Assembly (NCBI GenBank): GCA_950097015.1
Contig: CATNEN010000025.1
Span: 6,572,001-6,636,000 of the forward strand
Origin: Macrostomum hystrix
Lineage: Eukaryota; Animalia; Platyhelminthes
Direction of reading: 5' to 3'
Length of the DNA: 64,000 nt
The notes beneath the pieces are model-generated. The model saw nothing but the letters and a program-made list of their open reading frames with translations, made no database searches and was not told the origin of the DNA. Shown one piece after another: positions 1 through 64,000 of the stretch; the first letter of the stretch is position 1, and the number at the start of each line of letters is the position of its first letter. A program made the translations under genes and the position numbers.

Positions 1-204
1 GATTTAGGTGAGTGACAGCTGGACGTGACTTTAGTACTGCACTCCCCACAGAAAGGCGCGTTAATGCGTCTGATCGGGATATTGTGATAATGGCAAAAAT
101 TGCTTTAGTTTTCATAGTCTTCTAAACATTGGCCCAGTGTTTACTCATCTAGTTCAAAGTATAGGACGATATCAGCCCATTCCACTGATAAACAGCAGAC
201 ATCA

Positions 205-3200
205 AACACACACACACTCACTCACACACTCACACACTCACACTCACACTCACACACTCACACAATCACACACTCACTCACACACTCATACTCACACACT
301 CACACTCACACACTCACACAACCACACACTCACTCACACACTCACACACTCACACACTCACACACTCACACAATCACACACTCACTCACACACTCACACA
401 CTCACACACTCACACACTCACTCACACACACACTCACTCACACACAATCACACACACACACACTCACTTACATACTCACACACACTCACACAATCACACA
501 CTCACACACACACACTCACTCACACACTCACACACACACTTACTCACACACACTAACTCACTCACTCACACACTCACACACTCACTCACACACTCACACA
601 CTCACACACTCACACACTCACACACTCACACACTCACTCACACACTCACACACTCACACACTCACACACTCACACACTCACTCACTCACTCACACACTCA
701 CTCACTCACTCACACACTCACACACACTCACACACTTACTCACTCACTCACACACTCACACACACTCACACACTTACTCACTCACTCACTCACTCACACA
801 CTCACTCACACATTCACTCACACACTCACTCACACACTCACTCACTCACTCACACACTCACTCACTCACTCACACACTCACACACACTCACACACTCACT
901 CACTCACTCACTCACTCACACACTCACACACTCACTCACACACTCACACACTCACACACTCACACACTCACACACTCACACACTCACTCACACACTCACA
1001 CACTCACACACTCACACACTCACACACTCACACACTCACACACTCACTCACACACTCACACACTCACACACTCACACACTCACACACTCACTCACTCACT
1101 CACACACTCACTCACTCACTCACACACTCACACACACTCACACACTCACTCACTCACTCACTCACTCACACACTCACTCACACACTCACTCACTCACTCA
1201 CACACTCACTCACTCACTCACACACTCACACACACTCACACACTCACTCACTCACTCACTCACTCACACACTCACTCACACACTCACACACTCACACACT
1301 CACTCACACACTCACTCACTCACTCACTCACTCACACACTCACACACTCACACACACTCACTCACTCACTCACACACTCACACACTCACTCACACACTCA
1401 CACACTCACACACTCACACACTCACACACTCACACACTCACTCACACACTCACACACTCACACACTCACACACTCACTCACTCACTCACACACTCACTCA
1501 CTCACTCACACACTCACACACACTCACACACTCACTCACTCACTCACTCACTCACACACTCACTCACACACTCACACACTCACACACTCACACACTCACA
1601 CACTCACACACTCACTCACACACTCACACACTCACACACTCACACACTCACTCACTCACTCACACACTCACTCACTCACTCACACACTCACACACACTCA
1701 CACACTCACTCACTCACTCACTCACTCACACACTCACTCACACACTCACACACTCACACACTCACTCACACACTCACACACTCACTCACTCACTCACTCA
1801 CTCACTCACTCACACACTCACTCACACACTCACACACTCACTCACACACTCACTCACTCACTCACACACTCACACACACTCACACACTCACTCACTCACT
1901 CACTCACTCACACACTCACTCACACACTCACACACTCACACACTCACTCACACACTCACACACTCACTCACTCACTCACTCACTCACTCACTCACTCACT
2001 CACTCACACACTCACTCACTCACTCACACACTCACACTCACTCACACACTCACTCACTCACTCACTCACACACTCACTCACACATTCACTCACACACTCA
2101 CTCACACACTCACTCACTCACTCACACACTCACTCACTCACTCACACACTCACACACACTCACACACTCACTCACTCACTCACTCACTCACACACACTCA
2201 CACACTCACTCACTCACTCACTCACTCACACACTCACTCACACACTCACACACTCACACACTCACTCACACACTCACACACTCACTCACTCACTCACTCA
2301 CTCACACACTCACTCACTCACTCACACACTCACACACACTCACACACTCACTCACTCACTCACTCACTCACACACTCACTCACACACTCACACACTCACA
2401 CACTCACTCACACACTCACACACTCACTCACTCACTCACTCACTCACTCACTCACACACTCACTCACACACTCACTCACTCACTCACTCACTCACACACT
2501 CACACACTCACACACACTCACTCACTCACTCACACACTCACACACTCACTCACACACTCACACACTCACACACTCACACACTCACACACTCACACACTCA
2601 CTCACACACTCACACACTCACACACTCACACACTCACTCACTCACTCACACACTCACTCACTCACTCACACACTCACACACACTCACACACTCACTCACT
2701 CACTCACTCACTCACACACTCACTCACACACTCACACACTCACACACTCACACACTCACACACTCACACACTCACTCACACACTCACACACTCACACACT
2801 CACACACTCACTCACTCACTCACACACTCACTCACTCACTCACACACTCACACACACTCACACACTCACTCACTCACTCACTCACTCACACACTCACTCA
2901 CACACTCACACACTCACACACTCACTCACACACTCACACACTCACTCACTCACTCACTCACTCACTCACTCACACACTCACTCACACACTCACACACTCA
3001 CTCACTCACTCACTCACTCACTCACTCACACACTCACTCACACACTCACTCACTCACTCACTCACTCACACACTCACACACTCACACACACTCACTCACT
3101 CACTCACACACTCACACACTCACTCACACACTCACACACTCACACACTCACACACTCACACACTCACACACTCACTCACACACTCACACACTCACACACT

Positions 3201-4992
3201 CACACACTCACTCACTCACTCACACACTCACTCACTCACTCACACACTCACACACACTCACACACTCACTCACTCACTCACTCACTCACACACTCACTCA
3301 CACACTCACACACTCACACACTCACACACTCACACACTCACTCACACACTCACACACTCACACACTCACACACTCACTCACTCACTCACACACTCACTCA
3401 CTCACTCACACACTCACACACTCACTCACACACTCACACACTCACTCACTCACTCACACACTCACACACTCACACACTCACACACTCACTCACACACTCA
3501 CACACTCACACACTCACACACTCACTCACTCACTCACACACTCACACACTCACTCACTCACACACTCACTCACTCACTCACACACTCACACACACTCACA
3601 CACTCACTCACTCACTCACTCACTCACACACTCACTCACACACTCACACACTCACACACTCACTCACACACTCACACACTCACTCACTCACACACTCACA
3701 CACTCACTCACTCACTCACTCACTCACACACTCACTCACACACTCACACACTCACACACTCACTCACACACTCACTCACTCACTCACTCACTCACACACT
3801 CACACACTCACACACACTCACTCACTCACTCACACACTCACTCACTCACTCACACACTCACACACACTCACACACTTACTCACTCACTCACACACTCACA
3901 CACACTCACACACTTACTCACTCACTCACTCACTCACACACTCACTCACACATTCACTCACACACTCACTCACTCACTCACACACTCACTCACTCACTCA
4001 CACACTCACACACACTCACACACTCACTCACTCACTCACTCACTCACACACTCACTCACACACTCACACACTCACACACTCACTCACTCACACACTCACA
4101 CACACTCACACACTCACTCACTCACTCACTCACTCACACACTCACTCACACACTCACACACTCACACACTCACTCACACACTCACACACTCACTCACTCA
4201 CTCACTCACACACTCACTCACACACTCACTCACACACTCACACACTCACTCACACACTCACACACTCACTCACACACTCACACACTCACTCACACACTCA
4301 CACACTCACTCACACACTCACACACTCACACACTCACACACTCACACACTCACTCACACACTCACACACTCACACACTCACACACTCACTCACACACTCA
4401 CACACTCACTCACTCACTCACACACTCACACACACTCACACACTCACTCACTCACTCACTCACTCACACACTCACTCACACACTCACACACTCACACACT
4501 CACACACTCACACACTCACACACTCACTCACACACTCACACACTCACACACTCACACACTCACTCACTCACTCACACACTCACACACTCACTCACACACT
4601 CACACACTCACTCACACACTCACTCACTCACTCACACACTCACACACTCACACACTCACACACTCACTCACACACTCACACACTCACACACTCACACACT
4701 CACTCACTCACTCACACACTCACACACTCACTCACTCACACACTCACTCACTCACTCACACACTCACACACACTCACACACTCACTCACTCACTCACTCA
4801 CTCACACTCACACACTCACTCACACACTCACACACTCACACACTCACTCACACACTCACACACTCACTCACTCACTCACTCACACACTCACTCACACACT
4901 CACTCACACACTCACTCACACACTCACACACTCACACACTCACTCACACACTCACTCACACACTCACACACTCACTCACACACTCACACACA
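205..4992. repeat. 4.8-kb (CA)/(CTCA) mosaic microsatellite
   Basis: Mosaic of CACACT and CACT units with almost no G on the + strand. A block with rare 'cttact'/'cattca' variants near 730-820 recurs near 3870-3960. Confidence 0.97.
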
Positions 4993-10934: not shown

Positions 10935-12068
10935 ATGCCCGGTCATCAGCAGTTCAGCACGCCGGAGAGTCAGCTCCTGCCAGATCAGCAGCTGCTGGAG
11001 TTGATCAGGTTGGACCCCGCCGATCCCAACTGCTCGGAGCCGCAGCGGGCGCTGCTCTGGCAGGGCGCTACCAGCGAGGAGACGGTGATGGACGCGCTCT
11101 ACCTTTGCAAGTCGGCACTGGCCTTTCTAGCCCTGACCGGCAGTTGCGTGTCCGTCGGAATTTTTCGAATTCAACGCCAGCGCAGCGCCCTCATCCAGAT
11201 GCTGTTGCACCTGTCAGTCTGCGAGCTGCTGCTCAACTTGAGCGCATTTGTCTTCGAACTGTTCTACCTTCTGGTTATGCCGACAACCGGCCACCTCATG
11301 CCCGCCGGCCCGAACTGGCTAGCTTACTTTGTGCTGTACGGAGTGTGGCCGGCGTACAAGACTAGCATGGTTGTACGCAACTGGCTTATTGTACACATCG
11401 CCTGGCGACGCTATCGCGCCATCGGCGATGCTCTAGGAAGTCGTCGACGCGGCGATAGTCGGCGACTGATCAATTTGACATCCGCGGCTCTCTGGCTAGC
11501 GGCATGTCTGGTGACATTGCCCAGGGCCCTGGAGGTGACGTACACCCGGTGCCAGAGCTCCGGGCAGATCGTGGGGCTTCAGGCGGCGCCGTTCGCAAGT
11601 CACTCGGCCTACCGAGCCTACCCCAGCTGCTACTTCGCACTGCAGTCGCTGGCTCCGGTCTGCTGCCTGCTACTGACGAGCTGCCTGACCCTCTGCCGGC
11701 TGCGCAAATCCAACCGGGAGTTTCTGCACGACCTGCCAGCGCCAATCATGGCTGTACAGCGGCGGCGGGCCCAGAATGATTCGGTGAATCGCACGGTGTT
11801 GGTGCTCTGCTCGGTGTTTGTTGTGTGCGAGTTGCCAATGCTGGTGGCCGGAGTGCTGAAGGACTTCGATTGTCGCGACGCTTGCCAGGTCTTTCTCGGC
11901 GTGGCCAACATTCTGACCAGCGCCGACTCCGTAGCCAATTTTCTAGTCTATTTCCTATCCATCAGGCAGTTTAAACAGCGACTGTGCTGCAGCCGTGACA
12001 GCAAAAGCGATGTTAGAAAAGCGAAAGTACTCAGCGACAGTCTCCGGCGCATCAAAGGACAGCATTGA
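10935..12068 (+). CDS. Rhodopsin-class GPCR, FMRFamide/peptide-receptor-like orphan
   Basis: Single coding exon, 377 aa, seven hydrophobic segments. TM3 ends WRRYRAI (DRY position), TM4 W...LPR, TM5 P, TM6 FVVCELP, TM7 ANFLVY, basic helix 8. A splice acceptor near 10863 suggests a 5' UTR intron. Confidence 0.88.
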   Translation: MPGHQQFSTPESQLLPDQQLLELIRLDPADPNCSEPQRALLWQGATSEETVMDALYLCKSALAFLALTGSCVSVGIFRIQRQRSALIQMLLHLSVCELLLNLSAFVFELFYLLVMPTTGHLMPAGPNWLAYFVLYGVWPAYKTSMVVRNWLIVHIAWRRYRAIGDALGSRRRGDSRRLINLTSAALWLAACLVTLPRALEVTYTRCQSSGQIVGLQAAPFASHSAYRAYPSCYFALQSLAPVCCLLLTSCLTLCRLRKSNREFLHDLPAPIMAVQRRRAQNDSVNRTVLVLCSVFVVCELPMLVAGVLKDFDCRDACQVFLGVANILTSADSVANFLVYFLSIRQFKQRLCCSRDSKSDVRKAKVLSDSLRRIKGQH

Positions 12069-20547: not shown

Positions 20548-21907
20548 CAGGTGTGTCATAAGTAATGTCACTGTGGTTGTTGTGCGGGAACCCAAAGCAA
20601 TAATCATCCAAATATATTATATTCTGAAAGTACATTTATTGAGAAGTTGCCACCACACCTGAGCAGCAATTTTAATGTCTATGGCCAAAACTGTCGCAAG
20701 AATTTGTTAATCAGATTTAGCAAGCGCAACGCGATGAAATCTTCTTTTTGCAACGAGCAAAACTCAACATGAATCACGACAAGATGCACATCCAGTTCTA
20801 CGCTTTCATTCGCTTCAAGCTTGGAAAATCTGCACTTGAAGTAGAGGAGGATCTCCGGAACACACTGCCAGACAACTGCCCAACTCGCAGGACAATTTAT
20901 AGGTGGTTTCAGAACTTTACTGATCCTGGGTTCGAATTGGGAGATGCCGCCAGATCTGGACGACCATGTTCAACCAGGACAATAGAGAACATCGAAGTCA
21001 TCAGCGACCTGGTCAAGGAAGACCCGCGGCAGTCTGTCAGGGAGCTAGCGGACTGCTTGGAGATTGATTTCAAGACAGTCCATCGCATCTTGACAGAGGA
21101 TCTCCATCTCCGAAACGTCTGCTCGGTCTGGGTGCCCCATGACCTCACTGCGGACCAACGTCAGGCCCGTGTGAACTGCGCCAATCAGATCCGCAAGGTG
21201 TTCAGCAGCCGGGGCTTGGATGACATCCTAAATTGCCTGGTTGTTGAGGATGAGACCTGGCTCCACCTGGATGGCAAAAGCAGCAAGGCAGACAATCGCT
21301 GCTGGCTGGGAGCTGGGGACTCCAGGCTGACTGTGACCAGGAGGTCCATCTCAGACAAGAAGACCATGCTGCTGGTGGCATTCACGCCAAACAAACGAGT
21401 CTCCATCTGTACAACTCCGCCAAACACCAAGGTCGATGGCCAGTACTTCATCGACTTTGTCCGATCCCACACTGGGAACCTCTGGCGCACGCTCCGGTCA
21501 AACCCGATTCACCTGAACGAAGTTCTGTGGCAGATGGACAACGCACGGCCCCACACCTGTCAGGCTGTTTCGGATTTTCTGGCTGGACGGCGAGTAAATC
21601 TGCTCTGGCAGAGTCCCTACAGCCCAGACTTCAACTTGTGCGACAGGTTTCTCTTTAAATGGCTGAAGGCAGACTTTTCCCAGAGAAGTTTCGCAAACCA
21701 TGATGAGGTCAAAGAAGCCGCGTTGCACTGGTTCCGACAGCTGGAGGAAAAACACCTGCAGGCTGAGGTAGAGAAGCTGTACGAGCACTGCCAGAGGGTG
21801 ATTGATATTGGGGGACACTATGTTGTTGATTGATACAGTTTCGTTCATCTGCGATTGTTAGTTGGTCTGTTTTACCCTCAGTGACATTACTTATGACACA
21901 CCCGAAG
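20548..21907 (+). mobile_element. Mariner (Tc1/mariner, DD34D) transposon
   Basis: Perfect 24-bp inverted repeat GGTGTGTCATAAGTAATGTCACTG at both ends, TA on both flanks, and one internal transposase ORF. Confidence 0.92.
20769..21833 (+). CDS. Mariner transposase, intact (354 aa from ATG 20769)
   Basis: HTH N-terminus, WVPHDL motif, catalytic VVEDETW / MDNARPH / YSPDFNLCD with 34 residues between D2 and D3. Confidence 0.93.
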   Translation: MNHDKMHIQFYAFIRFKLGKSALEVEEDLRNTLPDNCPTRRTIYRWFQNFTDPGFELGDAARSGRPCSTRTIENIEVISDLVKEDPRQSVRELADCLEIDFKTVHRILTEDLHLRNVCSVWVPHDLTADQRQARVNCANQIRKVFSSRGLDDILNCLVVEDETWLHLDGKSSKADNRCWLGAGDSRLTVTRRSISDKKTMLLVAFTPNKRVSICTTPPNTKVDGQYFIDFVRSHTGNLWRTLRSNPIHLNEVLWQMDNARPHTCQAVSDFLAGRRVNLLWQSPYSPDFNLCDRFLFKWLKADFSQRSFANHDEVKEAALHWFRQLEEKHLQAEVEKLYEHCQRVIDIGGHYVVD

Positions 21908-27007: not shown

Positions 27008-28913
27008 TGTGGCGGCCGCTTTCTCCAGCGCTCTGCGTGGTGCTAGGGCAGCCACCCCAACTTTGACTCGCACTTGCGCTGGGCCGGGGCAGTATGCATA
27101 GGGCATGGCTTTGGCAGACGCCGCCATGCTCGCCCATCCACAGCCCGGCGCTCCAACGGCGCTGACGGTCGACGCCTCGGACACCGCCATAGGGGCGGCC
27201 ATGGCCAAGCTGTCGGACCCGTGGTCGGCACGTCAGCAGCGGCACCTCGCATACGTGTCGGAGTTCACCACCGACATCCGGCACGTAGCGGGCAAAGACA
27301 ATCCGGTGGCCGACGCTCTGTCCCGCTGCACCGTTGCCTCCGTTCAGCCGCTGCTTCCTGGTATAGACTATGAGGCCCTAGCGCGTGCGCAGACTTTAGA
27401 TGACCCTGCGCTTGCGGACACCGGTCTCAGGCTAGAACGAGTGGCACTGGGCCCCGGCCTGGAGGTCCTCTGCGACACCGTGACCGGCCGGCCACGACCG
27501 CTGGTGCCCGCCGACTTCCGCCGTGCCGTTTTCGACGCCATCCACAGCCTGGCGCACCCGTCGGTCCGCAGCACACGGCGCCTTGTGTCCGAGAAGTTCG
27601 TGTGGCCCGGACTCAAGAGGGACGTCGGCCAGTGGGCACGCAGCTGCATCGCCTGCCAGACGGCCAAAGTCCAGCGGCATGTAATCCCCCCACTGTCTAG
27701 CATCCCGGTGCCCAACAGCCGTTTTGCCCATGTCCACGTTGATCTGGTCGGTCCGTTGCCGCCGTCTCGCGGTTACACCTATTTGCTGACAGCAGTCGAC
27801 CGTTTCTCCCGCTGGCCGGAGGCATTTCCAATGGTCGACACATCTGCCGCCTCCTGCGCATCTGTCTTCATCGCCGGCTGGATCGCCCGTTTCGGTGTCC
27901 CCAGCGACATCACGTCCGACCGCGGCTCCCAGTTCACCTCAGAGCTGTGGAACAACGTTTCCAAGCTGCTTGGCATGCAGCTCCATCACACAACGGCTTT
28001 TCATCCGCAGTCAAATGGGCTGGTGGAGCGTTTTCATCGCCAGCTCAAGGCATCTCTGATGGCGCGCCTGACTGGACCGGCTTGGGGCGACGAGCTTCCC
28101 TGGGCACTACTGGGCATCAGGACGGCCCCCAAGGAGGACATTGGCGCCTCCTCTGCAGAGCTGGTTTACGGCGCGCCGCTGACCGTGCCGGGCGAGTGCC
28201 TACAGACCACGCCCGCGACAGGCTCCTACGACCAGTCCCTAGCCCGGCTTCGTGGTGCTGTGCAATCATTCCGACCGCCTCCGACCTCTCGACACGGCCG
28301 CGTTGCAGCCTCCGTGCCCGACGCACTGGACACTTGCACGCACGTTTTCATCCGCCGTGACGGCCACCGCCCGTCGCTGCAAAGACCGTATTTCGGCCCA
28401 TTCAAGGTGCTCGAGCGCAACACCAAAACCTTTCTGCTCGATTTGGGCACGCGGCACGATCACGTGGCGGTGGATCGGCTGAAGCCTGCGGTGCTGGACC
28501 CCTGCGAAGCAGTACCGGCCCCACCGCTGCGACCCAGAGGCCGCCCTCGCCGAGGCCGCCACCGCCACCGCCGCGGACGTATCAACCGGCAGGTCACCAG
28601 CCAAACACCGCGGCTCCTCCCGATCCGATTCAGCGTCGTCAGCTACCACCGCGCCAATGCCGGCCGACCCGATTTCGCTAATAGGCCAGCGCTAGGGGGG
28701 AGCTATGTGGCGGCCGCTCTCTCCAGCGCTCTGCGTGGTGCTAGGGCAGCCACCCCAACTTTGACTCGCACTTGCGCTGGGCCGGGGCAGTATGCATAGG
28801 GCTTAAGCTCATGTACACGCGCCGGCCTATAAATCACTATCTTTTGGAACGCGCTGCACGTTACCTGTTCTTCGCCAAATAAAATTTAACTTTACGTGGC
28901 TGCAATCGCCACA
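27008..28913 (+). mobile_element. Ty3/Gypsy LTR retrotransposon, internally deleted
   Basis: 4-bp TSD GTAT (27004-27007 and 28914-28917). The 3' LTR 28706-28913 has TGTGGCG...CGCCACA ends, TATAAAT and AATAAA, preceded by the polypurine tract AGGGGGGAG. The 5' LTR is truncated at about 27103 and differs by one mismatch. Confidence 0.92.
27105..28799 (+). CDS. Gypsy pol remnant: partial RNase H plus complete integrase
   Basis: LTVDASDTAIGA and HVAGKDNPVADALSR (RNase H ends), HHCC zinc finger (H..AHP...C..C), HVDLVGP / TSDRGSQF / NGLVER with D35E spacing. gag, PR and RT are absent. Confidence 0.88.
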   Translation: MALADAAMLAHPQPGAPTALTVDASDTAIGAAMAKLSDPWSARQQRHLAYVSEFTTDIRHVAGKDNPVADALSRCTVASVQPLLPGIDYEALARAQTLDDPALADTGLRLERVALGPGLEVLCDTVTGRPRPLVPADFRRAVFDAIHSLAHPSVRSTRRLVSEKFVWPGLKRDVGQWARSCIACQTAKVQRHVIPPLSSIPVPNSRFAHVHVDLVGPLPPSRGYTYLLTAVDRFSRWPEAFPMVDTSAASCASVFIAGWIARFGVPSDITSDRGSQFTSELWNNVSKLLGMQLHHTTAFHPQSNGLVERFHRQLKASLMARLTGPAWGDELPWALLGIRTAPKEDIGASSAELVYGAPLTVPGECLQTTPATGSYDQSLARLRGAVQSFRPPPTSRHGRVAASVPDALDTCTHVFIRRDGHRPSLQRPYFGPFKVLERNTKTFLLDLGTRHDHVAVDRLKPAVLDPCEAVPAPPLRPRGRPRRGRHRHRRGRINRQVTSQTPRLLPIRFSVVSYHRANAGRPDFANRPALGGSYVAAALSSALRGARAATPTLTRTCAGPGQYA

Positions 28914-29546: not shown

Positions 29547-31440
29547 ATTGTAGTACGATAAAAGCGGTCTTTCGCGTCCCTGGGATTTCCCTAGGGTAAT
29601 CCAAAAAATTGGTTAAACTCAAATTGTCTATGGTCGTTAAGCTATAATATTGAAAACAGAATTGTATTTAGAAGAAGTATAAACAACTAAACAAATTACA
29701 TTATTTCTAACAAGTAAAACAGGTTATTTTCCGTAAATGTCATGCAAAATATCAATATGTCACTTATGATAAATGTTGAATGTGCAGCCGGTGAACGTAC
29801 CACTGAAGCCGCCACTAGAACTAGAACTGCAAGTTGACAGATTGGTGGTTGAAGCTGAACTTACTTTATGTTCACATCCAGCCCGACTTAATGCATCCGA
29901 AACGCATGCCAGTTGGGACTCCTTCTTCTTAGAGTATCTTATGTACCGCTGGGTTGACACAACCGAACGATGTCCCGTCACATGGCCGATGTCTTCCAGC
30001 GAAAAACCGGCGTTGTGCAGCTCCGTCACGACCGTTGCTCTGATGCAATGAGGCGCATACTTTCTAGACAGTCCAGCCTTCTCAGATATTGTCTGCATCA
30101 TTGATCCCAGCGTATTGTGTCCAACCGGCTGCTTGGCAAAATACCACGAGTCTGCGTTAGGCTTAGCCCTCGGCCGAATGAAGACGATGCTGTTCACGAC
30201 ACCTTCTCTGTTCTTAGCATTCGCGATCCTTTCCATGTAGTCATTGAAGCAGCCCACAGGGCAGTCAGGTAAGCCGGTAGAAACCATCAGCACCTGTTTA
30301 GTATTTTTTGCAGCATTTTCCAAGTGTCCTCCATCAGTCTTTGTAGCCATCGGCCGCAACTTGATAGCCTCTCGCCCAGATGCAGTGATGATCTCTTCGA
30401 ACGACTCAACTGTTAGGCGTCGAAACCACTCTCTCGCACGCAGCCCAAAATGAGTCATCATATTGTAATAGAACTCATGCTGTAACTTTGCTGGTGTGCT
30501 CCGATCGAAATACTTTCGAAGCTTAGCTAGATCATCGTCTTCTATGGAGCTGAATCTCTTTACTTCTCCGCCGTTCTCCAGAAACAGTTTAGCAGCAACT
30601 TTTAACATATTGTTCGCTTTTTTGAACAGCTGGTCAGATATGATATCCACTCCACGCGTCCGAAGCAGCCAGCGATACAAACCGGCCCGGAAACAGCGCA
30701 AAGTAGCAGGTGCATAGTACCCACCGTCAGAGCGCTTGATAGTTCCATACGCAATTCGGATACAGGCCGCCAATCGCTCCTCTGCGCAGGTCTTAATGTC
30801 GACTTCAAGTTGAAGGGACTCCATGGTCGAATAAAATTTTTCTAGAGCCCATTTTTCTTGCTGACTCGCACTTGGTGGTTCAGTTTTTTTCTCAACCAAA
30901 TCAAGATCTTGCATTATAGCCTCGATATCTTCGTTTCGAGGCTCTTTTGCATCTAGCAGTTCGGCAAGCGTATTATCATCAATTCTCGCAGCGAATGCAG
31001 CCGCGATCTCTTCTATTCTATCTGCGTCCATTTCTAGAGCAAATAGAGCGTTGTCAGCTTCCATGCGTGCGGCTATCTCGTCCTTCGTCAGTCCAACTAC
31101 GTCTCCGTATTCAATATGTAGCAGACCGCTAGGGTAGGATCTATCTCCTTCCATCAGGTTAAGTGATTTCGATCCAGAAGATCCAGAGTTTAACTCGCTA
31201 TATTCGGCCATAGACATCAGAAATATAGACATCGGTCTTTAATGGGTGTTTCCCCAGTCAGGCGGTCTTTCGCGTCCTCGGACTGATCCATTTTTAGAGA
31301 AATCTTTAAAATAGATGGGGAAACTATTATCGTACTACAATAACCCTATAGCACGGTTTCCTCGGTTTTTAATGTCTATGGCCTCGAGGCGCTTCGCGCC
31401 CTCGGCCATGACATTAAAGACCTCGGAAACCATGCTATAG
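29547..31440 (-). mobile_element. Crypton-like tyrosine recombinase DNA element (boundaries tentative)
   Basis: One YR ORF bracketed by a perfect 15-bp inverted repeat (29547-29561 and 31327-31341), a 16-bp direct repeat (about 29564 and 31262) and a 95-nt hairpin (31346-31440). Confidence 0.7.
29760..31232 (-). CDS. Tyrosine recombinase of Crypton/DUF3504 type, intact, 490 aa
   Basis: Catalytic set visible: FGLRARE (R), ATKT (K), PHCIRAT (HxxR), TGHRS (H), TQRY (Y). KWALEKF resembles the N-terminal motif of this family. Intronless, with no RT or gag nearby. Confidence 0.88.
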   Translation of the reverse strand: MSIFLMSMAEYSELNSGSSGSKSLNLMEGDRSYPSGLLHIEYGDVVGLTKDEIAARMEADNALFALEMDADRIEEIAAAFAARIDDNTLAELLDAKEPRNEDIEAIMQDLDLVEKKTEPPSASQQEKWALEKFYSTMESLQLEVDIKTCAEERLAACIRIAYGTIKRSDGGYYAPATLRCFRAGLYRWLLRTRGVDIISDQLFKKANNMLKVAAKLFLENGGEVKRFSSIEDDDLAKLRKYFDRSTPAKLQHEFYYNMMTHFGLRAREWFRRLTVESFEEIITASGREAIKLRPMATKTDGGHLENAAKNTKQVLMVSTGLPDCPVGCFNDYMERIANAKNREGVVNSIVFIRPRAKPNADSWYFAKQPVGHNTLGSMMQTISEKAGLSRKYAPHCIRATVVTELHNAGFSLEDIGHVTGHRSVVSTQRYIRYSKKKESQLACVSDALSRAGCEHKVSSASTTNLSTCSSSSSGGFSGTFTGCTFNIYHK

Positions 31441-31787
31441 TATTACATTGAAGTCAGCTTTCCTGCTTGTCGGCAAAACTATTTAGCGTTTTAGCTTATA
31501 CGAGCTATTTGGTCGCAGGTATCATGTACAGTATTGGCTATCGACGAGGTGCATTAACGCTATTGATGTTTGAGAAACCTTATTGCTATTAACAATAAGT
31601 AAGGAAAAATGGCTCGTAGCTTTCGTAAGTACTCACCTTTTTTCTAAGAGACTAGTTTTTGTCCGAAATTTGTCTTAACTAAATCAAGTAAATGAACAGA
31701 GATACAAGCTGCTGTTTAAAATGATTTCGGGTTCGATGTTTCAGGTTGTATTTGAATTGCCATGCATCTTCGTGATAGTTCAGAATT

Positions 31788-32895
31788 TTAATAGTCATAT
31801 ACGGACTCCCTTTCGAAGTTCCACATTCCGGGCCAGTAGTAGCTACGTTTTCCCGACGACTCCTTGTCGAAGTTCCACATTCCGGGCCAGTAGTAGCTTC
31901 GCTTTCCCGACGACTCCTTGTCGAAGTTCCACATTCCGGGCCAGTAGTAGCTTCGCTTTCCCGACGACTCCTTGTCGAAGTTCCACATTCCGGGCCAGTA
32001 GTAGCTTCGCTTTCCCGACGACTCCTTGTCGAAGTTCCACATTCCGGGCCAGTAGTAGCTACGTTTTCCCGACGACTCCTTGTCGAAGTTCCACATTCCG
32101 GGCCAGTAGTAGCTACGTTTTCCCGACGACTCCTTGTCGAAGTTCCACATTCCAGGCCAGTAGTAGCTACGTTTTCCCGACGACTCCTTGTCGAAGTTCC
32201 ACATTCCGGGCCAGTAGTAGCTTCGCTTTCCTCTCGACTCCTTCGCAAAGTTCCACATTCCAGGCCAGTAGTAGCTTTGCTTTCCTCTCGACTCCTTGTC
32301 GAAGTTCCACATTCCAGGCCAGTAGTAGCTTCGCTTTCCCGACGACTCCTTGTCGAAGTTCCACATTCCAGGCCAGTAGTAGCTTCGCTTTCCTCTCGAC
32401 TCCTTCGCAAAGTTCCACATTCCGGGCCAGTAGTAGCCTCGCTTTCCTGACGACTCCTTGTCGAAGTTCCACATTCCAGGCCAGTAGTAGCTACGTTTTC
32501 CCGACGACTCCTTGTCAAAGTTCCACATTCCGGGCCAGTAATAGCTTCGCTTTCCTCTCGACTCCTTCGCAAAGTTCCACATTCCGGGCCAGTAGTAGCC
32601 GCGTTTTCCCGCCGAGTCCTTGTCGAAGTTCCACATTCCGGGCGAGTAATAGCCCCTCTTTTCGGGGTCCTCCATTGCCAGCTCTCCTACGTCTGTGTCG
32701 GTGTCGACATCATCAGTGGCAGTCGTTTCTGCTTGTTTGCATTTTCCTTGGGTGCAAACTAACAGTCCTACCAACAATAGCAGTAGAACAAAGCGACAGG
32801 ACCCGCTGTGTGCATTTAAAGGATGAGTTCTCATGTAGGCATCATCGTGCCGTATTGAAGGTATGTAAAACGCCATTGTCTTACCTGCGTTCCAT
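31788..32895 (-). CDS. Secreted multi-copy peptide precursor (neuropeptide/pheromone-like prohormone): 16 x 18-aa units, SYYWPGMWNFDKESS-GKR
   Basis: Exon 1 32895-32885 (ATG GAA CGC AG|GTAAG), 79-nt intron, exon 2 32805-31788. The spliced product of 342 aa starts MERSGSCRFVLLLLLVGLLVCTQG (signal peptide), then an acidic spacer, KR, and 54-bp units ending in G-K-R. Confidence 0.9.
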
Positions 32896-32982: not shown

Positions 32983-33058
32983 CTTTTAATATAGACTTGC
33001 TGTCAGGGTGATAAGCTATAGATAGAGATGGTTCCTGCTCGATTTCCCATTGGCCAAT
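32983..33058 (-). promoter_or_regulatory. Putative core promoter of the peptide precursor gene
   Basis: TATATTAAAA on the minus strand about 90 bp upstream of the ATG, and an ATTGGCCAAT double CCAAT palindrome at 33049-33058. Confidence 0.35.
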
Positions 33059-51740: not shown

Positions 51741-52430
51741 AAATCGACGATTGACGATGACGAGGAGGGTGTAGTGGGCTGCTGAATCCATGCTTATCAA
51801 TGCACAGATCAAGAAGTTTAGGAAGAATTTGATAATTTGAGTACAGAAATATCGCTTACCATACCAAAAGCCGAGATAGACTGTTTGCGAAAGGTTTAAG
51901 TTTTAAATTTTCATTTCACCAAACATTGACTAAGCTACTTTATTGAGACAGTCCATGTCTTAGTCATTTTTTAAGTACATCGACTCTGCGGATTTACACT
52001 TTGAAATGAGAAATCATACAAGAGATGTACATTACATAGTTCCACAGTTTTTTTACAGATAGAATGTACGTCCGACACCTCTAAACTAACGCATAGCACG
52101 ACACACATAGTAGGCTCCAAGTTCGCTTATAGGGCTTAGTATCTTGTTAATTAATGAGAACCTACTGGATGATCTCCAGAGGCTGCCACAGTTGCAGCTC
52201 CATCACCAACGGAAATTTGCCGCTGCTGTTCCTGCACATTTTTTTATCATAAATAAATTTTTGGAACTTTTCAGAATCAGTCTACTATTAGTAGGCAAGC
52301 AGTGAGTACGCGATGCCTTTAATTTAATTATGCTTGCGTCACTCCGAAACCTGCTAGTCAAAAGAAAAACAGCACAACAGTCTGAACACAAATCTGTCTC
52401 GATTGGCATCATATCCTGGCCTCTGCTTAC

Positions 52431-52540
52431 CCTAGCCTTCGTGGTGACTTCGGCTTCCAACTTTGGCGCGAGATTCACGGGTCGCTCATTGGAGTGAGCA
52501 TTCAGCAGAGCTGCAGTGTTTGATGCGGGGCGGCATGGAG
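52431..52540 (-). CDS. Ferlin linker exon (tentative)
   Basis: cattAG|(A)PCRPASNTAALLNAHSNERPVNLAPKLEAEVTTKAR|GTAAGC; phase 1-0 matches the upstream exon. Confidence 0.5.
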
Positions 52541-52589
52541 CTAATGAAATTGGTTGATGAATCGCTTGCCGCGGAGGAGGAGTGGGAGA

Positions 52590-53115
52590 GAAGCGGAAGA
52601 GGAACGGAAGAGGAATAGAAGAGGACCGGAAGAGGACAGGAAGAGGAACGGAAGAGGAATAGAAAATAAACGGGGAGGACTGGAAAAGGACCGGAAGAGG
52701 TTCGGAAGAAGACCGGTAGAGGACTGGAAAAGGACTGGAAGAGGACCCGTAGAGGACTGGAAGAGGACTGGAAGAGGACCGGAAGAGGACAGGAAGAGGA
52801 ACGGAAGAGGAATAGAAAATAAACGGGGAGGACTGGAAAAGGACCGGAAGAGGTTCGGAAGAAGACCGGTAGAGGACTGGAAAAGGACTGGAAGAGGACC
52901 CGTAGAGGACTGGAAGAGGACTGGAAGAGGACCGGAAGAGGACAGGAAGAGGAACGGAAGAGGAATAGAAAATAAACGGGGAGGACTGGAAAAGGACCGG
53001 AAGAGGTTCGGAAGAAGACCGGTGGAGGACTGGAAGAGGACCGATAAAGGACTGGAAGAGGACTGGAAGAGGACTGGAAGAGGATTGGAAGAAGACTAGA
53101 AGAGGACTGGAAGAG
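52590..53115. repeat. Purine-rich GAAGAGGAC repeat with 153-bp higher-order unit
   Basis: The 51-codon period is visible in the spurious + strand ORF 52554-53099. Confidence 0.88.
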
Positions 53116-53145
53116 CAGAAGAATGGCATTCTCTCAGTCTCTCAC

Positions 53146-53755
53146 CCGGAAAGTTGGTGATGGCATCGTACTCTTCGCTAATTGGCTCGGTGCGGTACTC
53201 GTCCAGGCACTTGATCACGTGCACACCCACCATTGGCTTTCGGCCGAACTGGCGATGATCGCGCACCCGGATGTTCATGGGCGGCAGGTAGAGCGTCTCC
53301 TTTGGTAGCATGACGTCCATGAACAGCAGCGGCTGCATGAAGTTCGGATTTCGCTTCGTGTTCTTGATGACGTCTGAGGCGACCACGTGACCGCCGATCT
53401 CGAATTCGACACTCGGCGAGGTGACAGACATGAGCTGGAAGCTCTGCATGTTGCGCACGCCCCAGCAGAGAATCTCGATGCCAGTCCTCTGCAACACCGG
53501 CTTGATGCCGTCTGGCACAATGAAGAGGTCGGCGCCGCGCTTTGACGGCGTCGGCGGCATGGGCTCGGCGATCAGGAACAGCTCGAACGCGGCCAGCAGT
53601 TCGCCGCCCTCCTTGCCGCCCTTGAAGACTGGATGCCACTGCAGCACTGGGCGGCGGGGATCCGTGGGATCCAGCTTCACCATTGGCTGCACCAGCGCCC
53701 GGCCAAGGAATTCGTCCTCTCCGAGCTGGTCGGCGTCGAATATCTCGACGACCAC
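53146..53755 (-). CDS. Ferlin exon: C2 C-half plus next C2-like domain
   Basis: VVVEIFDADQLGEDEFLGR...GELLAAFELF...IEILCWGVRNM...PPMNIRVRDHRQFGRKPMVG. Confidence 0.93.
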
Positions 53756-53878
53756 CTGGCGGAGGGGCGGGTCAGATAAGTCAGAACTCTGAGTTAGAAT
53801 CATACGAGTTAGTTGGGAACATAGTGGTGTTAAGAATTTTGTGTAAGACAAATCAGTAAAAATTTGCGAATTTCTAAC

Positions 53879-54105
53879 CGGCGGCGGATTGGCCTCGATG
53901 CTGTACGGGTCGCTGAACATTTCCGCGTTGTCGAAGATCAGGGTCTGGTCCCAGGTCGGGCACAGAGTCTGGTCGATGGTCTCGGTGACACCGGATCTGG
54001 TGTGAAAGCACACCCTCGCGTAGGGGTCGGACAGTCCTGACTGGTCGCCGGCGAGCAGGTCGCGAGCTTGGAAGATGTAGGACCTCAGCTGCCACTTGCG
54101 GCCGT
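53879..54105 (-). CDS. Ferlin exon: C2 domain N-half
   Basis: GRKWQLRSYIFQARDLLAGDQSGLSDPYARVCFH...TLCPTWDQTLIF. Confidence 0.92.
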
Positions 54106-57210: not shown

Positions 57211-57354
57211 CTGCGGACCAAGAAGAGCAGAGTTCACGGATGATCATCATGATTGTTTTTGACTCCTCACGATAGTGTACAACACATCTGTGTGACATAT
57301 TAACGACTACTGTAGACCAATGCGGATTCGTGTGGATCAGCTTAATTAGCGTCT

Positions 57355-60300
57355 TTGACACCTAGACTGTGTAGATTAATTAGCGGCTATGGCACCTAGA
57401 CTGTGTAGATTAATTAGCGGCTATGACACCTAGACTGTGTAGACTAATTAGCGGCTATGACACCTAGACTGTGTAGACTAATTAGCGTCTTTGACACCTA
57501 GACTGTGTAGACTAATTAGCGTCTTTGACACCTAGACTGTGTAGACTAATTAGCGTCTTTGACACCTAGACTGTGTAGATTAATTAGCGTCTTTGACACC
57601 TAGACTGTGTAGATTAATTAGCGTCTTTGACACCTAGACTGTGTAGACTAATTAGCGTCTTTGACACCTAGACTGTGTAGATTAATTAGCGTCTTTGACA
57701 CCTAGACTGTGTAGATTAATTAGCGGCTATGACACCTAGACTGTGTAGATTAATTAGCGGCTATGACACCTAGACTGTGTAGACTAATTAGCGTCTTTGA
57801 CACCTAGACTGTGTAGATTAATTAGCGTCTTTGACACCTAGACTGTGTAGACTAATTAGCGTCTTTGACACCTAGACTGTGTAGATTAATTAGCGTCTTT
57901 GACACCTAGACTGTGTAGATTAATTAGCGTCTTTGACACCTAGACTGTGTAGATTAATTAGCGGCTATGACACCTAGACTGTGTAGATTAATTAGCGGCT
58001 ATGACACCTAGACTGTGTAGACTAATTAGCGTCTTTGACACCTAGACTGTGTAGATTAATTAGCGTCTTTGACACCTAGACTGTGTAGACTAATTAGCGT
58101 CTTTGACACCTAGACTGTGTAGATTAATTAGCGTCTTTGACACATAGACTGTGTAGATTAATTAGCGGCTATGACACCTAGACTGTGTAGATTAATTAGC
58201 GTCTTTGACACCTAGACTGTGTAGACTAATTAGCGTCTTTGACACCTAGACTGTGTAGATTAATTAGCGTCTTTGACACATAGACTGTGTAGATTAATTA
58301 GCGGCTATGACACCTAGACTGTGTAGGTTAATTAGCGGCTATGACACCTAGACTGTGTAGACTAATTAGCGTCTTTGACACCTAGACTGTGTAGACTAAT
58401 TAGCGTCTTTGACACCTAGACTGTGTAGGTTAATTAGCGGCTATGACACCTAGACTGTGTAGACTAATTAGCGTCTTTGACACCTAGACTGTGTAGATTA
58501 ATTAGCGGCTATGACACCTAGACTGTGTAGATTAATTAGCGGCTATGACACCTAGACTGTGTAGACTAATTAGCGTCTTTGACACCTACACTGTGTAGAT
58601 TAATTAGCGTCTTTGACACCTAGACTGTGTAGATTAATTAGCGTCTTTGACACCTAGACTGTGTAGATTAATTAGCGTCTTTGACACCTAGACTGTGTAG
58701 ATTAATTAGCGTCTTTGACACCTAGACTGTGTAGATTAATTAGCGGCTATGACACCTAGACTGTGTAGATTAATTAGCGGCTATGACACCTAGACTGTGT
58801 AGATTAATTAGCGGCTATGACACCTAGACTGTGTAGATTAATTAGCGGCTATGACACCTACACTGTGTAGATTAATTAGCGGCTATGACACCTACACTGT
58901 GTAGATTAATTAGCGTCTTTGACACCTAGACTGTGTAGATTAATTAGCGGCTATGACACCTAGACTGTGTAGATTAATTAGCGTCTTTGACACCTAGACT
59001 GTGTAGATTAATTAGCGGCTATGACACCTAGACTGTGTAGATTAATTAGGGTCTTTGACACCTAGACTGTGTAGACTAATTAGCGGCTATGACACCTAGA
59101 CTGTGTAGATTAATTAGCGGCTATGACACCTAGACTGTGTAGATTAATTAGCGGCTATGACACCTAGACTGTGTAGATTAATTAGGGTCTTTGACACCTA
59201 GACTGTGTAGATTAATTAGCGTCTTTGACACCTAGACTGTGTAGACTAATTAGCGTCTTTGACACCTAGACTGTGTAGATTAATTAGCGTCTTTGACACC
59301 TAGACTGTGTAGATTAATTAGCGTCTTTGACACCTAGACTGTGTAGATTAATTAGCGTCTTTGACACCTAGACTGTGTAGATTAATTAGCGTCTTTGACA
59401 CCTAGACTGTGTAGATTAATTAGCGTCTTTGACACCTAGACTGTGTAGACTAATTAGCGGCTATGACACCTAGACTGTGTAGACTAATTAGCGGCTATGA
59501 CACCTAGACTGTGTAGATTAATTAGCGGCTATGACACCTAGACTGTGTAGATTAATTAGCGTCTTTGACACCTAGACTGTGTAGATTAATTAGCGTCTTT
59601 GACACCTAGACTGTGTAGATTAATTAGCGTCTTTGACACCTAGACTGTGTAGATTAATTAGCGTCTTTGACACCTAGACTGTGTAGATTAATTAGCGGCT
59701 ATGACACCTAGACTGTGTAGATTAATTAGCGTCTTTGACACCTAGACTGTGTAGATTAATTAGCGTCTTTGACACCTAGACTGTGTAGATTAATTAGCGT
59801 CTTTGACACCTAGACTGTGTAGATTAATTAGCGGCTATGACACCTAGACTGTGTAGATTAATTAGCGGCTATGACACCTAGACTGTGTAGATTAATTAGC
59901 GGCTATGACACCTAGACTGTGTAGATTAATTAGCGGCTATGACACCTAGACTGTGTAGATTAATTAGCGTCTTTGACACCTAGACTGTGTAGATTAATTA
60001 GCGGCTATGACACCTAGACTGTGTAGATTAATTAGCGTCTTTGACACCTAGACTGTGTAGACTAATTAGCGGCTATGACACCTAGACTGTGTAGATTAAT
60101 TAGCGGCTATGACACCTAGACTGTGTAGATTAATTAGGGTCTTTGACACCTAGACTGTGTAGATTAATTAGCGGCTATGACACCTAGACTGTGTAGGTTA
60201 ATTAGCGGCTATGACACCTAGACTGTGTAGATTAATTAGCGGCTATGACACCTAGACTGTGTAGACTAATTAGCGGCTATGACACCTAGACTGTGTAGAT

Positions 60301-63300
60301 TAATTAGCGGCTATGACACCTAGACTGTGTAGATTAATTAGGGTCTTTGACACCTAGACTGTGTAGATTAATTAGCGGCTATGACACCTAGACTGTGTAG
60401 GTTAATTAGCGGCTATGACACCTAGACTGTGTAGATTAATTAGCGGCTATGACACCTAGACTGTGTAGATTAATTAGCGGCTATGACACCTAGACTGTGT
60501 AGATTAATTAGCGTCTTTGACACCTAGACTGTGTAGGTTAATTAGCGTCTTTGACACCTAGACTGTGTAGATTAATTAGCGTCTTTGACACCTAGACTGT
60601 GTAGATTAATTAGCGTCTTTGACACCTAGACTGTGTAGATTAATTAGCGTCTTTGACACCTAGACTGTGTAGACTAATTAGCGGCTATGACACCTAGACT
60701 GTGTAGATTAATTAGCGTCTTTGACACCTAGACTGTGTAGACTAATTAGGGTCTTTGACACCTAGACTGTGTAGACTAATTAGCGTCTTTGACACCTAGA
60801 CTGTGTAGACTAATTAGCGTCTTTGACACCTAGACTGTGTAGATTAATTAGCGGCTATGACACCTAGACTGTGTAGGTTAATTAGCGTCTTTGACACCTA
60901 GACTGTGTAGACTAATTAGCGTCTTTGACACCTAGACTGTGTAGATTAATTAGCGGCTATGACACCTAGACTGTGTAGATTAATTAGCGGCTATGACACC
61001 TAGACTGTGTAGATTAATTAGCGGCTTTGACACCTAGACTGTGTAGACTAATTAGCGTCTTTGACACCTAGACTGTGTAGATTAATTAGCGTCTTTGACA
61101 CCTAGACTGTGTAGATTAATTAGCGGCTATGACACCTAGACTGTGTAGATTAATTAGCGTCTTTGACACCTAGACTGTGTAGATTAATTAGCGGCTATGA
61201 CACCTAGACTGTGTAGACTAATTAGCGGCTATGACACCTAGACTGTGTAGATTAATTAGCGGCTATGACACCTAGACTGTGTAGGTTAATTAGCGTCTTT
61301 GACACCTAGACTGTGTAGGTTAATTAGCGTCTTTGACACCTAGACTGTGTAGATTAATTAGCGGCTATGACACCTAGACTGTGTAGATTAATTAGCGGCT
61401 ATGACACCTAGACTGTGTAGGTTAATTAGCGTCTTTGACACCTAGACTGTGTAGATTAATTAGCGTCTTTGACACCTAGACTGTGTAGGTTAATTAGCGT
61501 CTTTGACACCTAGACTGTGTAGATTAATTAGCGTCTTTGACACCTAGACTGTGTAGATTAATTAGCGTCTTTGACACCTAGACTGTGTAGATTAATTAGC
61601 GTCTTTGACACCTAGACTGTGTAGATTAATTAGCGGCTATGACACCTAGACTGTGTAGACTAATTAGCGTCTTTGACACCTAGACTGTGTAGATTAATTA
61701 GCGGCTATGACACCTAGACTGTGTAGATTAATTAGCGTCTTTGACACCTAGACTGTGTAGATTAATTAGCGTCTTTGACACCTAGACTGTGTAGATTAAT
61801 TAGCGGCTATGACACCTAGACTGTGTAGACTAATTAGCGTCTTTGACACCTAGACTGTGTAGATTAATTAGCGGCTATGACACCTAGACTGTGTAGATTA
61901 ATTAGCGGCTATGACACCTAGACTGTGTAGATTAATTAGGGTCTTTGACACCTAGACTGTGTAGATTAATTAGCGGCTATGACACCTAGACTGTGTAGAT
62001 TAATTAGCGTCTTTGACACCTAGACTGTGTAGATTAATTAGCGGCTATGACACCTAGACTGTGTAGACTAATTAGCGTCTTTGACACCTACACTGTGTAG
62101 ACTAATTAGCGTCTATGACACCTAGACTGTGTAGATTAATTAGCGGCTATGACACCTAGACTGTGTAGACTAATTAGCGTCTTTGACACCTAGACTGTGT
62201 AGATTAATTAGCGTCTTTGACACCTAGACTGTGTAGATTAATTAGCGGCTATGACACCTAGACTGTGTAGGTTAATTAGCGTCTTTGACACCTAGACTGT
62301 GTAGATTAATTAGCGGCTATGACACCTAGACTGTGTAGACTAATTAGCGTCTTTGACACCTAGACTGTGTAGACTAATTAGCGTCTTTGACACCTAGACT
62401 GTGTAGACTAATTAGCGTCTTTGACACCTAGACTGTGTAGACTAATTAGCGTCTTTGACACCTAGACTGTGTAGATTAATTAGCGTCTTTGACACCTAGA
62501 CTGTGTAGATTAATTAGCGGCTATGACACCTAGACTGTGTAGGTTAATTAGCGTCTTTGACACCTAGACTGTGTAGACTTAATTAGCGTCTTTGACACCT
62601 AGACTGTGTAGATTAATTAGCGGCTATGACACCTAGACTGTGTAGATTAATTAGCGGCTATGACACCTAGACTGTGTAGATTAATTAGCGGCTTTGACAC
62701 CTAGACTGTGTAGACTAATTAGCGGCTATGACACCTAGACTGTGTAGATTAATTAGCGGCTATGACACCTAGACTGTGTAGGATTAATTAGCGGCTATGA
62801 CACCTAGACTGTGTAGATTAATTAGCGGCTTTGACACCTAGACTGTGTAGACTAATTAGCGGCTATGACACCTAGACTGTGTAGATTAATTAGCGGCTAT
62901 GACACCTAGACTGTGTAGGTTAATTAGCGGCTATGACACCTAGACTGTGTAGATTAATTAGCGGCTATGACACCTAGACTGTGTAGGTTAATTAGCGGCT
63001 ATGACACCTAGACTGTGTAGATTAATTAGCGTCTTTGACACCTAGACTGTGTAGATTAATTAGCGGCTATGACACCTAGACTGTGTAGACTTAATTAGCG
63101 TCTTTGACACCTAGACTGTGTAGATTAATTAGCGTCTTTGACACCTAGACTGTGTAGATTAATTAGCGTCTTTGACACCTAGACTGTGTAGATTAATTAG
63201 CGTCTTTGACACCTAGACTGTGTAGATTAATTAGCGTCTTTGACACCTAGACTGTGTAGACTAATTAGCGGCTATGACACCTAGACTGTGTAGATTAATT

Positions 63301-64000
63301 AGCGGCTATGACACCTAGACTGTGTAGATTAATTAGCGGCTATGACACCTACACTGTGTAGATTAATTAGCGGCTATGACACCTACACTGTGTAGATTAA
63401 TTAGCGTCTTTGACACCTAGACTGTGTAGATTAATTAGCGGCTATGACACCTAGACTGTGTAGATTAATTAGCGTCTTTGACACCTAGACTGTGTAGATT
63501 AATTAGCGGCTATGACACCTAGACTGTGTAGATTAATTAGGGTCTTTGACACCTAGACTGTGTAGACTAATTAGCGGCTATGACACCTACACTGTGTAGA
63601 TTAATTAGCGGCTATGACACCTAGACTGTGTAGATTAATTAGCGGCTATGACACCTAGACTGTGTAGATTAATTAGGGTCTTTGACACCTAGACTGTGTA
63701 GATTAATTAGCGGCTATGACACCTAGACTGTGTAGATTAATTAGCGTCTTTGACACCTAGACTGTGTAGACTAATTAGCGTCTTTGACACCTAGACTGTG
63801 TAGACTAATTAGCGGCTATGACACCTAGACTGTGTAGACTAATTAGCGTCTTTGACACCTAGACTGTGTAGACTAATTAGCGGCTATGACACCTAGACTG
63901 TGTAGATTAATTAGCGGCTATGACACCTAGACTGTGTAGATTAATTAGCGTCTTTGACACCTAGACTGTGTAGATTAATTAGCGTCTTTGACACCTAGAC
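57355..64000. repeat. 34-bp satellite (GACACCTAGACTGTGTAGATTAATTAGCG[GCTAT/TCTTT]), >6.6 kb, runs off the window
   Basis: About 195 head-to-tail units; starts about 145 bp upstream of a ferlin acceptor, so it is presumably intronic. Confidence 0.98.

Follow-up and report, generated by a model that had tools for sequence, protein, structure and literature searches.

Within a 64,000-nucleotide (nt) stretch of the genome of the flatworm Macrostomum hystrix (GenBank assembly GCA_950097015.1, contig CATNEN010000025.1, positions 6,572,001 to 6,636,000; hereafter the window, whose own numbering is used unless a locus is named) we have analyzed a minus-strand gene that very probably encodes a processed, secreted peptide precursor. 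The predicted protein consists of a signal peptide, an acidic spacer and 16 tandem units built on an aromatic core with the motif W-P-G-M-W. An earlier note, made from the letters of the window alone, had proposed a prohormone architecture for this locus, and the proposal has gained support on two counts: the core follows a dibasic site in all copies of four related proteins, and both the core and the G-K-R processing signal are under purifying selection. Among the members of a small uncharacterised Macrostomum family the gene is, on the comparisons made here, the most expanded, and the part held constant in this family is the N-terminal core of the peptide.

Precursor architecture and coding capacity

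An uninterrupted open reading frame (ORF) of 362 codons (362 amino acids plus stop) extends over 31788-32876 on the minus strand. Its leader of 74 amino acids has the hydrophobic core FVLLLLLVGLLV followed by an acidic spacer that ends in E-K-R. The top Kyte-Doolittle 9-mer of the leader is VLLLLLVGL (mean 3.42), which a rule-based check accepts as a signal-peptide core, and signal cleavage is predicted at C-T-Q-G/K, before Lys45, where T and G at positions -3 and -1 agree with the von Heijne rule. The spacer is followed by exactly 16 units of 18 amino acids, which make an array of 864 nt without stop codon or frameshift, for which Tandem Repeats Finder (TRF) reported a period of 54, 15.7 copies and 91% matches. 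The unit SYYWPGMWNFDKESS plus GKR accounts for ten of the 16 copies and GYYWPGMWNFAKESR plus GKR for two; SYYWPGMWNFAKESR plus GKR, SYYWPGMWNFDKESR plus GKQ and GYYSPGMWNFDKDSA plus GKR are represented once each, and the final unit, SYYWPGMWNFERESVYDY, reads directly into the stop. The dibasic borders are E-K-R before unit 1, K-R after 14 of the 15 internal units and K-Q after the remaining one, and Gly16, the amide donor, directly precedes the dibasic site in all 15 internal units. When the whole window was scanned with a degenerate DNA pattern back-translated from WPGMWNF, 16 matches were obtained against 0.04 expected by chance, all of them within the locus. The signal peptide, acidic spacer, KR border, 16 units of 18 amino acids and unit types described in the earlier note were recovered exactly from the ORF and the TRF output. 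The parts of the precursor are as follows.

32745-32876, minus strand: predicted signal peptide, with the start codon at 32876 and an alternative in-frame Met at 32834, ending at the predicted C-T-Q-G/K site
32655-32744, minus strand: acidic propeptide or spacer of 30 amino acids, net charge -6, ending in E-K-R
31791-32654, minus strand: array of 16 x 54 nt, each unit reading [S/G]YYWPGMWNF, a 5-amino-acid tail and G-K-R, the last unit ending ...ERESVYDY
32277-32279, minus strand: CAA (Gln) in place of Arg in the K-R site of unit 7, with predicted fusion of units 7 and 8 into a 33-mer

Blocks of identical units are found in the pairwise unit-distance matrix (2=5, 9=11=15 and 12=13=14) and indicate recent unequal crossing-over.

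A locus of this kind could be non-functional, either a minisatellite with frames open by chance or a decaying pseudogene. The window contains more than 20 tandem arrays, transposons lie on the flanks of the locus, three frames are open across the array with its 54-nt period, and exact-sequence look-ups of the precursor (with both Met starts) and of seven more ORFs of the window found none on record, so that the window does not stem from the deposited annotated proteome of M. lignano. Only the frame of the precursor, however, continues upstream through an acidic spacer and a signal peptide to an ATG, and the array keeps that frame free of stops and frameshifts throughout. Codon differences between the units are distributed in a manner hard to expect of a satellite: 120 are synonymous and 14 nonsynonymous in core residues 2-10 (YYWPGMWNF), 107 and 14, respectively, in G-K-R, whereas the five tail residues show 9 synonymous and 104 nonsynonymous differences. 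The synonymous excess argues that selection acts at the protein level, its specific targets being the core and the processing signal, and that it is purifying in both. Homologues exist at the protein level, and the core in two of the related sequences described below (L001 and L004) and in the window is written with different Pro and Gly codons. A single frame with a leader, the synonymous excess in core and GKR, and homologues with different codons together speak for a real coding gene as distinct from the minisatellites of the window; the non-functional alternative is largely refuted and hardly credible.

Relatives in Macrostomum and the conserved core

An exhaustive phmmer search with the precursor against 1.84 billion representatives returned 26 matches, each of which was inspected. 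Three of them are true relatives (P0001, P0004 and P0014/L004); most of the matches turned out to be repeat noise (P0002, P0003, P0005, P0009, P0013, P0019, P0021, P0026 and others).

The top match, P0001 (UniProt A0A1I8HFB1; E 1.4e-21, 73% identity), is a Macrostomum lignano protein bearing the automatic name 'Salivary secreted protein'. Like the window gene it has a signal peptide, a short spacer ending in D-K-R and equal-length tandem units between K-R sites, and its K-R-bounded repeat, GYYWPGMWNFRNAD, contains the identical core GYYWPGMWNF. It differs from the window gene in its units of 16 amino acids with the tail R-N-A-D and no Gly, so that its peptides would not be amidated, and in an unrelated signal peptide and upstream region; its database entry is incomplete.

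The second relative, P0004 of M. lignano (PAA81773.1/PAA82422.1/PAA89280.1; UniProt A0A267G6W2), is encoded at three genomic loci and comprises a signal peptide, three cores with long unequal tails, one of which ends in E-G-K-R, and a C-terminal Cys-loop segment. P0014 is a fragment of a complete ORF of 166 amino acids on contig L004 (Logan SRR30276804); this ORF has four cores, is orthologous to P0004 and shares its Cys-loop. Since L004 is continuous across the position of the intron in the P0004 gene of M. lignano, an origin from mRNA is suggested, that is, transcription of one family member. P0004 and L004 share with the window gene the signal peptide, the core [A/G]-[S/Y/T]-[Y/F]-W-P-G-M-W-x-[F/Y/H] right after RR or KR and a basic residue soon after it, and the P0004 unit GYYWPGMWNFDR...EGKR is 92-95% identical in DNA over the core to window units. 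Unlike the window gene they have only three to four copies, in units of 20-34 amino acids with long unequal tails, and most copies lack Gly before the dibasic site. Their Cys-loop (Y-W-L-G-K-A-C-G-E-T-G-D..A-C-S) does not occur in the window ORF, and tblastn over the window detected no such exon, which places the window gene, on this evidence, in a 'pure array' subtype together with P0001.

The Cys-loop of the P0004-type paralogues, Y-W-L-G-K-A-C-G-E-T-G-D-x-x-A-C-S-[IV]-L-N-G (L001:3930-4040; L004:560-647), starts like a degenerate core, Y-W-x-G, and may represent a distinct disulfide-bonded product of these precursors. The 5' untranslated part of L004 (L004:100-160) holds about 2.5 direct copies of a motif of about 21 nt, CGAACTCCCTGGCAACCGCAG, running into the start codon.

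When the four sequences were aligned (alignment A1), the P, G, M and W columns proved invariant in three core copies; a further W is invariant in two of the three, Ser being found there in the first unit of the window gene. Immediately before the cores the alignment has invariant R or K-R columns, and the profile scores range from E 3e-58 to 3e-40. The window gene has the core x-[Y/S/T]-[Y/F]-W-P-G-M-W right after KR or RR in a predicted secreted precursor, as is characteristic of the family. No further members were found with a profile of all four sequences. A word-seeded protein search with the full precursor gave no match, probably owing to the limits that its length window and candidate cap set, and the relatives were found later by phmmer. 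A scan of metagenome DNA for two WPGMW cores at repeat spacing yielded seven loci, all of them low-complexity or GC-rich chance matches without the dibasic and Y-Y context. The peptide, which the earlier note could assign to no family, thus belongs to a small uncharacterised family already present in public databases (A0A1I8HFB1, PAA81773 with two further copies, and one contig).

Every unit of the four proteins begins its core, [G/S/A]-[Y/S/T]-[Y/F]-W-P-G-M-W-x-[F/Y/H], right after KR or RR, while the length of the spacers between cores ranges between 4 and about 22 residues. Such an arrangement is to be expected if dibasic cleavage defines the functional N-terminus of the peptide, and the fixed junction combined with variable spacers makes a strong case against an uncleaved structural repeat protein of the eggshell, cement or adhesive type, cross-linked via Tyr or Lys. 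Flatworm eggshell proteins are rich in Tyr, Gly and Lys, the repeat region of the window gene contains 12% Tyr, 11% Trp, 12% Gly and 10% Lys, and P0004 has runs of Tyr, all of which would suit such a protein. The signal peptide with an acidic propeptide ending in KR is nevertheless prohormone-like, and nothing resembling the known adhesive or eggshell proteins emerged from the Pfam searches; a structural role is judged very improbable.

Nearly every unit has a basic residue one or two positions downstream of the core, the four proteins providing the variants NF-DK, NF-AK, NF-ER, NF-R, QF-DR, NF-DR, HF-NR, HF-SR, QY-RR and RH-R; in one unit, RY-QQRR, it lies three to four positions away. Beyond it neither the sequence nor the length nor a Gly before the next dibasic site is conserved across the family. 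The family signature is therefore best described as the N-terminal aromatic core x-Y-Y-W-P-G-M-W-x-[FY] with a nearby basic residue, and the amidated Ser end, which the earlier note had stressed, does not define the family, for the Gly-KR signal, the tail length and the Ser-amide are not kept in the relatives.

The same basic residue, together with the variability in length and sequence of all that follows it, could be taken to mean that the active peptide is the short core in non-amidated form (about 10-12 amino acids, e.g. SYYWPGMWNFD), released by a monobasic cut at Lys/Arg, and that the E-S-S-amide piece is a spacer. We regard this as rather improbable. The sites lack the upstream basic residue at P4, P6 or P8 usual for monobasic cleavage according to the Devi and NeuroPred rules, the retention of Gly16 and K-R in 14 of 15 units with synonymous variation of K and R is hard to square with a discarded spacer, and the conserved basic residue may simply belong to the pharmacophore. 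Because Gly-Lys-Arg is kept in the window gene with synonymous variation, amidation is probably used there.

Predicted processing and function

Processing of the precursor is expected to follow the usual route. The signal peptide would direct it into the endoplasmic reticulum and then be cleaved; in secretory granules a convertase of the PC2/PC1 type would cut after K-R (15 sites), a carboxypeptidase would trim off K-R, and peptidylglycine alpha-amidating monooxygenase (PAM) would convert the exposed Gly into a C-terminal amide. All of these steps, from signal cleavage to the action of PAM, are inferred from established prohormone biochemistry. The predicted amidated products number 14: ten SYYWPGMWNFDKESS-NH2, two GYYWPGMWNFAKESR-NH2, one GYYSPGMWNFDKDSA-NH2 and one fused 33-mer amide, which would arise since one site is K-Q. 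The 'up to 15' amidated peptides of the earlier note are compatible with this outcome, the count becoming 14, with the 33-mer included, if G-K-Q stays uncut. A non-amidated C-terminal 18-mer and the acidic propeptide would be released as further products. The calculated [M+H]+ values are 1895.806 for SYYWPGMWNFDKESS-NH2, 4180.901 for the fused 33-mer and 2392.002 for the C-terminal free acid, with 1890.874 and 1736.737 as additional expected masses and 1465.588 or 1350.561 for a short core; left intact, the protein would have roughly 35 kDa. The part recognised by a receptor would most likely be x-Y-Y-W-P-G-M-W-N-F, which has a Pro-Gly turn at its centre, together with the basic residue one or two positions later, the tail and the amide being specific to the lineage or the paralogue. 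For a PC2 homologue of M. lignano the in situ pattern suggests nervous-system-specific expression, and its knock-down is lethal (PMC4490696).

As the earlier note had maintained, no described peptide family matches the precursor. Searches of Pfam, NCBIfam and PDB profiles at permissive thresholds gave nothing meaningful, no relevant paper came up when the full-text literature was searched for the motif, fragments of it and the accessions, and the planarian prohormone paper with its eight supplements does not contain WPG, GMW or YYW. Several families have been considered individually and rejected. Against the Wamide/myoinhibitory peptide (MIP) family stand the Ser-, Arg- or Ala-amide C-termini and a Trp spacing of W-x3-W, not W-x6-W. 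RFamide/FMRFamide-like peptides and NPY/NPF do not fit because no unit has RF or RY before Gly and the products are 15-mers, not a single peptide of about 36-40 amino acids. Orcokinin and pedal peptide are non-amidated peptides of about 13-17 amino acids with a conserved N-terminal x-F-D-x-I and a hydrophobic C-terminal end; the units studied here have N-F-D in mid-peptide only, and neither Pfam nor the exhaustive search produced a match to that family.

Peptides of the AKH/RPCH/GnRH type, such as pQLNFSPGW-amide and its spiralian relatives, deserve a separate comment. The resemblance consists of an aromatic residue at position 4, Trp at position 8 and Pro-Gly between them, and, for the P0004-type paralogues, of a Cys-containing C-terminal part of the precursor; it has been treated as coincidence, and the sequence searches lent it no support. 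Unlike those peptides, that of the window lacks N-terminal Gln/pyroGlu and starts with Ser or Gly, does not follow directly on the signal peptide, is present in 16 copies after a spacer of 30 amino acids and continues for seven residues past Trp8 (N-F-D-K-E-S-S). An origin from the [F/Y]-W-P-G-M of the Ty3/gypsy Integrase H2C2 zinc finger has been dismissed as a pentapeptide coincidence: the Pfam match of Integrase H2C2 to P0001 covers ten residues and, at 14 bits, stays below the cut-off of 25.5; F-V-W-P-G-L stands in the integrase of the window itself; and the matches found by blastp are only 6-8 amino acids long, with E above 2.

In design the gene resembles multi-copy amidated precursors in general (molluscan FMRFamide, cnidarian GLWamide, flatworm npp), which have the same signal peptide, acidic spacer and near-identical Gly-Lys-Arg copies, homogenised, as here, by unequal crossing-over. 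It differs from them in the unrelated peptide and in the conservation of an N-terminal core instead of a C-terminal amide motif. As an analogy of mechanism only, yeast alpha-factor may be mentioned, a bulk-secreted pheromone made as tandem Trp-rich Pro-Gly peptides of about 13 amino acids that are released at K-R; the factor comes from a fungus, shares no homology with the peptides described here and carries no amide, and its Glu-Ala spacers are removed by a dipeptidyl aminopeptidase.

Taking processing and comparisons together, we lean towards a lineage-specific neuronal or endocrine signalling peptide as the product. Several observations weigh against this view. The relatives have kept neither the amidation nor the tail, and the C-terminal amide motif is what most neuropeptide families conserve. 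P0001 carries its salivary name, although an automatic name is weak evidence, and the Tyr-rich stretches of the P0004-type paralogues recall cross-linked structural proteins. The gene is located amid transposons and satellites and its exact sequence is on no record, and the family was found by phmmer, profile and metagenome scan only in Macrostomum-type sequences, a distribution common for reproductive or gland secretory genes.

The narrow distribution and the name of P0001 would suit an exocrine gland peptide (prostate or seminal, pharyngeal, epidermal or adhesive-associated), cut by furin or a PC-type enzyme and discharged in bulk, outside the animal or into a mate, as a pheromone, a seminal-fluid peptide or a deterrent instead of a neuronal transmitter. 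Such a role would also agree with the 16 copies, with the fast evolution of tail and amide among family members and with the Arg at position 15 of some units, which creates an R-G-K-R furin consensus usable in the constitutive pathway. Gland and neuron are not distinguished by anything in the sequence; Gly-Lys-Arg under purifying selection in equal-length units is, however, most typical of neuropeptide precursors, and neuropeptide families specific to flatworms are common, for which reasons an exocrine peptide, the main alternative, is considered less likely. The main peptide carries no net positive charge, being roughly neutral to acidic, and is therefore a poor fit to a classical cationic antimicrobial role.

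A signalling peptide thus stays the preferred product. The fuller proposal, plausible but tentative, is that the W-P-G-M-W peptides constitute an undescribed Macrostomum-restricted signalling system with an N-terminal Pro-Gly-turn pharmacophore, in which one paralogue underwent recent amplification to 16 copies and gained amidation.

Gene model, genomic surroundings and significance

The earlier note spoke of a spliced protein and ended the locus at 32895. Splicing is not needed, because the frame stays open without a break from the ATG at 32876 onward, and the intron is hypothetical. Three starts can be envisaged: the ATG at 32876, whose surroundings (A at -3, G at +4) are the best of the three as a Kozak context but which leaves a long n-region; the in-frame ATG at 32834; and an ATG at 32895 joined in frame via a putative 55-nt intron, GTAAGA...AG (32884-32830). 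The signal-peptide core and the mature products are identical for all three. The P0004 paralogue at L001 has a first exon of 18 nt and an intron of 562 nt, and the tiny size of that exon makes a start through the 55-nt intron thinkable, although mean introns of Macrostomum measure 0.5-1.4 kb. A start codon supplied by a spliced leader was rejected, as the only nearby acceptor, AG/AACTC at 32829, puts the leader ATG out of frame. The candidate elements recognised by inspection are listed below.

32885-32895, minus strand: hypothetical first mini-exon ATGGAACGCAG, ending at the consensus donor AG/GTAAGA
32830-32884, minus strand: hypothetical 55-nt intron GTAAGA...ATGAG; its excision would join the mini-exon in frame (M-E-R-R-T-H-P-L...), and if it is retained the upstream ATG opens an upstream ORF of four codons only
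33049-33058, minus strand: palindromic ATTGGCCAAT, a CCAAT-box-like upstream element, candidate only
32984-32993, minus strand: TATA-like box TATATTAAAA, at a distance of about 90-110 nt upstream from the putative start codons, candidate only
31787-31792, minus strand: ATTAAA, a variant poly(A) signal with the stop TAA (31788-31790) inside it, candidate only

At the P0004-type locus L001 of M. lignano an ATTGG lies upstream of a TATA box, a layout similar to that of the window gene, although promoter alignment of the window gene with the P0004 loci showed no real conservation.

The peptide gene is situated in a transposon-rich stretch. An ORF of 490 amino acids at 29760-31232 (minus strand) with Phage_integrase and DUF3504 domains, a Crypton-like tyrosine recombinase, terminates about 550 bp from the precursor stop on its downstream side; 27105-28799 (plus strand) is a pol fragment of a long terminal repeat retrotransposon (RNase H, Integrase_H2C2 and rve, with the usual F-V-W-P-G-L motif), and 20748-21833 (plus strand) an ORF for a Tc1/mariner-type DDE_3 transposase. 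About 20 kb from the peptide gene, at 10935-12068 (plus strand), an ORF of 377 amino acids encodes a rhodopsin-family seven-transmembrane protein (Pfam 7tm_1, E 2.6e-14). No relative of it (10935-12065) was found at E<=1e-10 in a collection of 5.8 billion proteins, and it may be a lineage-specific orphan G-protein-coupled receptor; its proximity to the peptide gene is no evidence of pairing. A C2-domain ORF at 53096-54013 (minus strand; Pfam C2, E 6e-12) adjoins another at 52203-53129 (minus strand) which is built on an 11/22-nt GGAAGAGGAC repeat.

Tandem repeats are abundant in the remainder of the window. Positions 202-4992 are occupied by about 4.8 kb of C/A-rich simple repeat (CACACACT with CACT variants), with a GC skew near -1.0 and a plus strand essentially without G. 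A 34-nt satellite in at least 196 copies of 95% identity fills 57342-64000 and runs past the window end, and more than 20 further minisatellites with periods of 11-153 are scattered across the window. This richness in arrays is consistent with the 15% of simple and tandem repeats reported for M. lignano (PMC5730564).

The gene described here introduces a new peptide family within an ordinary gene type: the family is undescribed, and the multi-copy design of the precursor is classic. No general principle is changed by it, since flatworms are well known to have both taxon-restricted neuropeptide families and multi-copy precursors of the KR/GKR type. Macrostomum serves as a genetic model, with transgenesis and RNA interference, for regeneration, stem cells and sexual conflict, yet its peptide signalling has been catalogued only poorly. 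A peptide that is restricted to this lineage, strongly amplified and built on a defined conserved core is a directly testable ligand and an easy target for in situ and RNA interference work. The window gene also offers a small natural experiment on the gain of amidation and of copy number in a peptide family. If these peptides do form a separate signalling system, a receptor of their own, as yet an orphan, would go with them, and their physiological role would be peculiar to the lineage, such as one in mating, feeding or adhesion behaviour.

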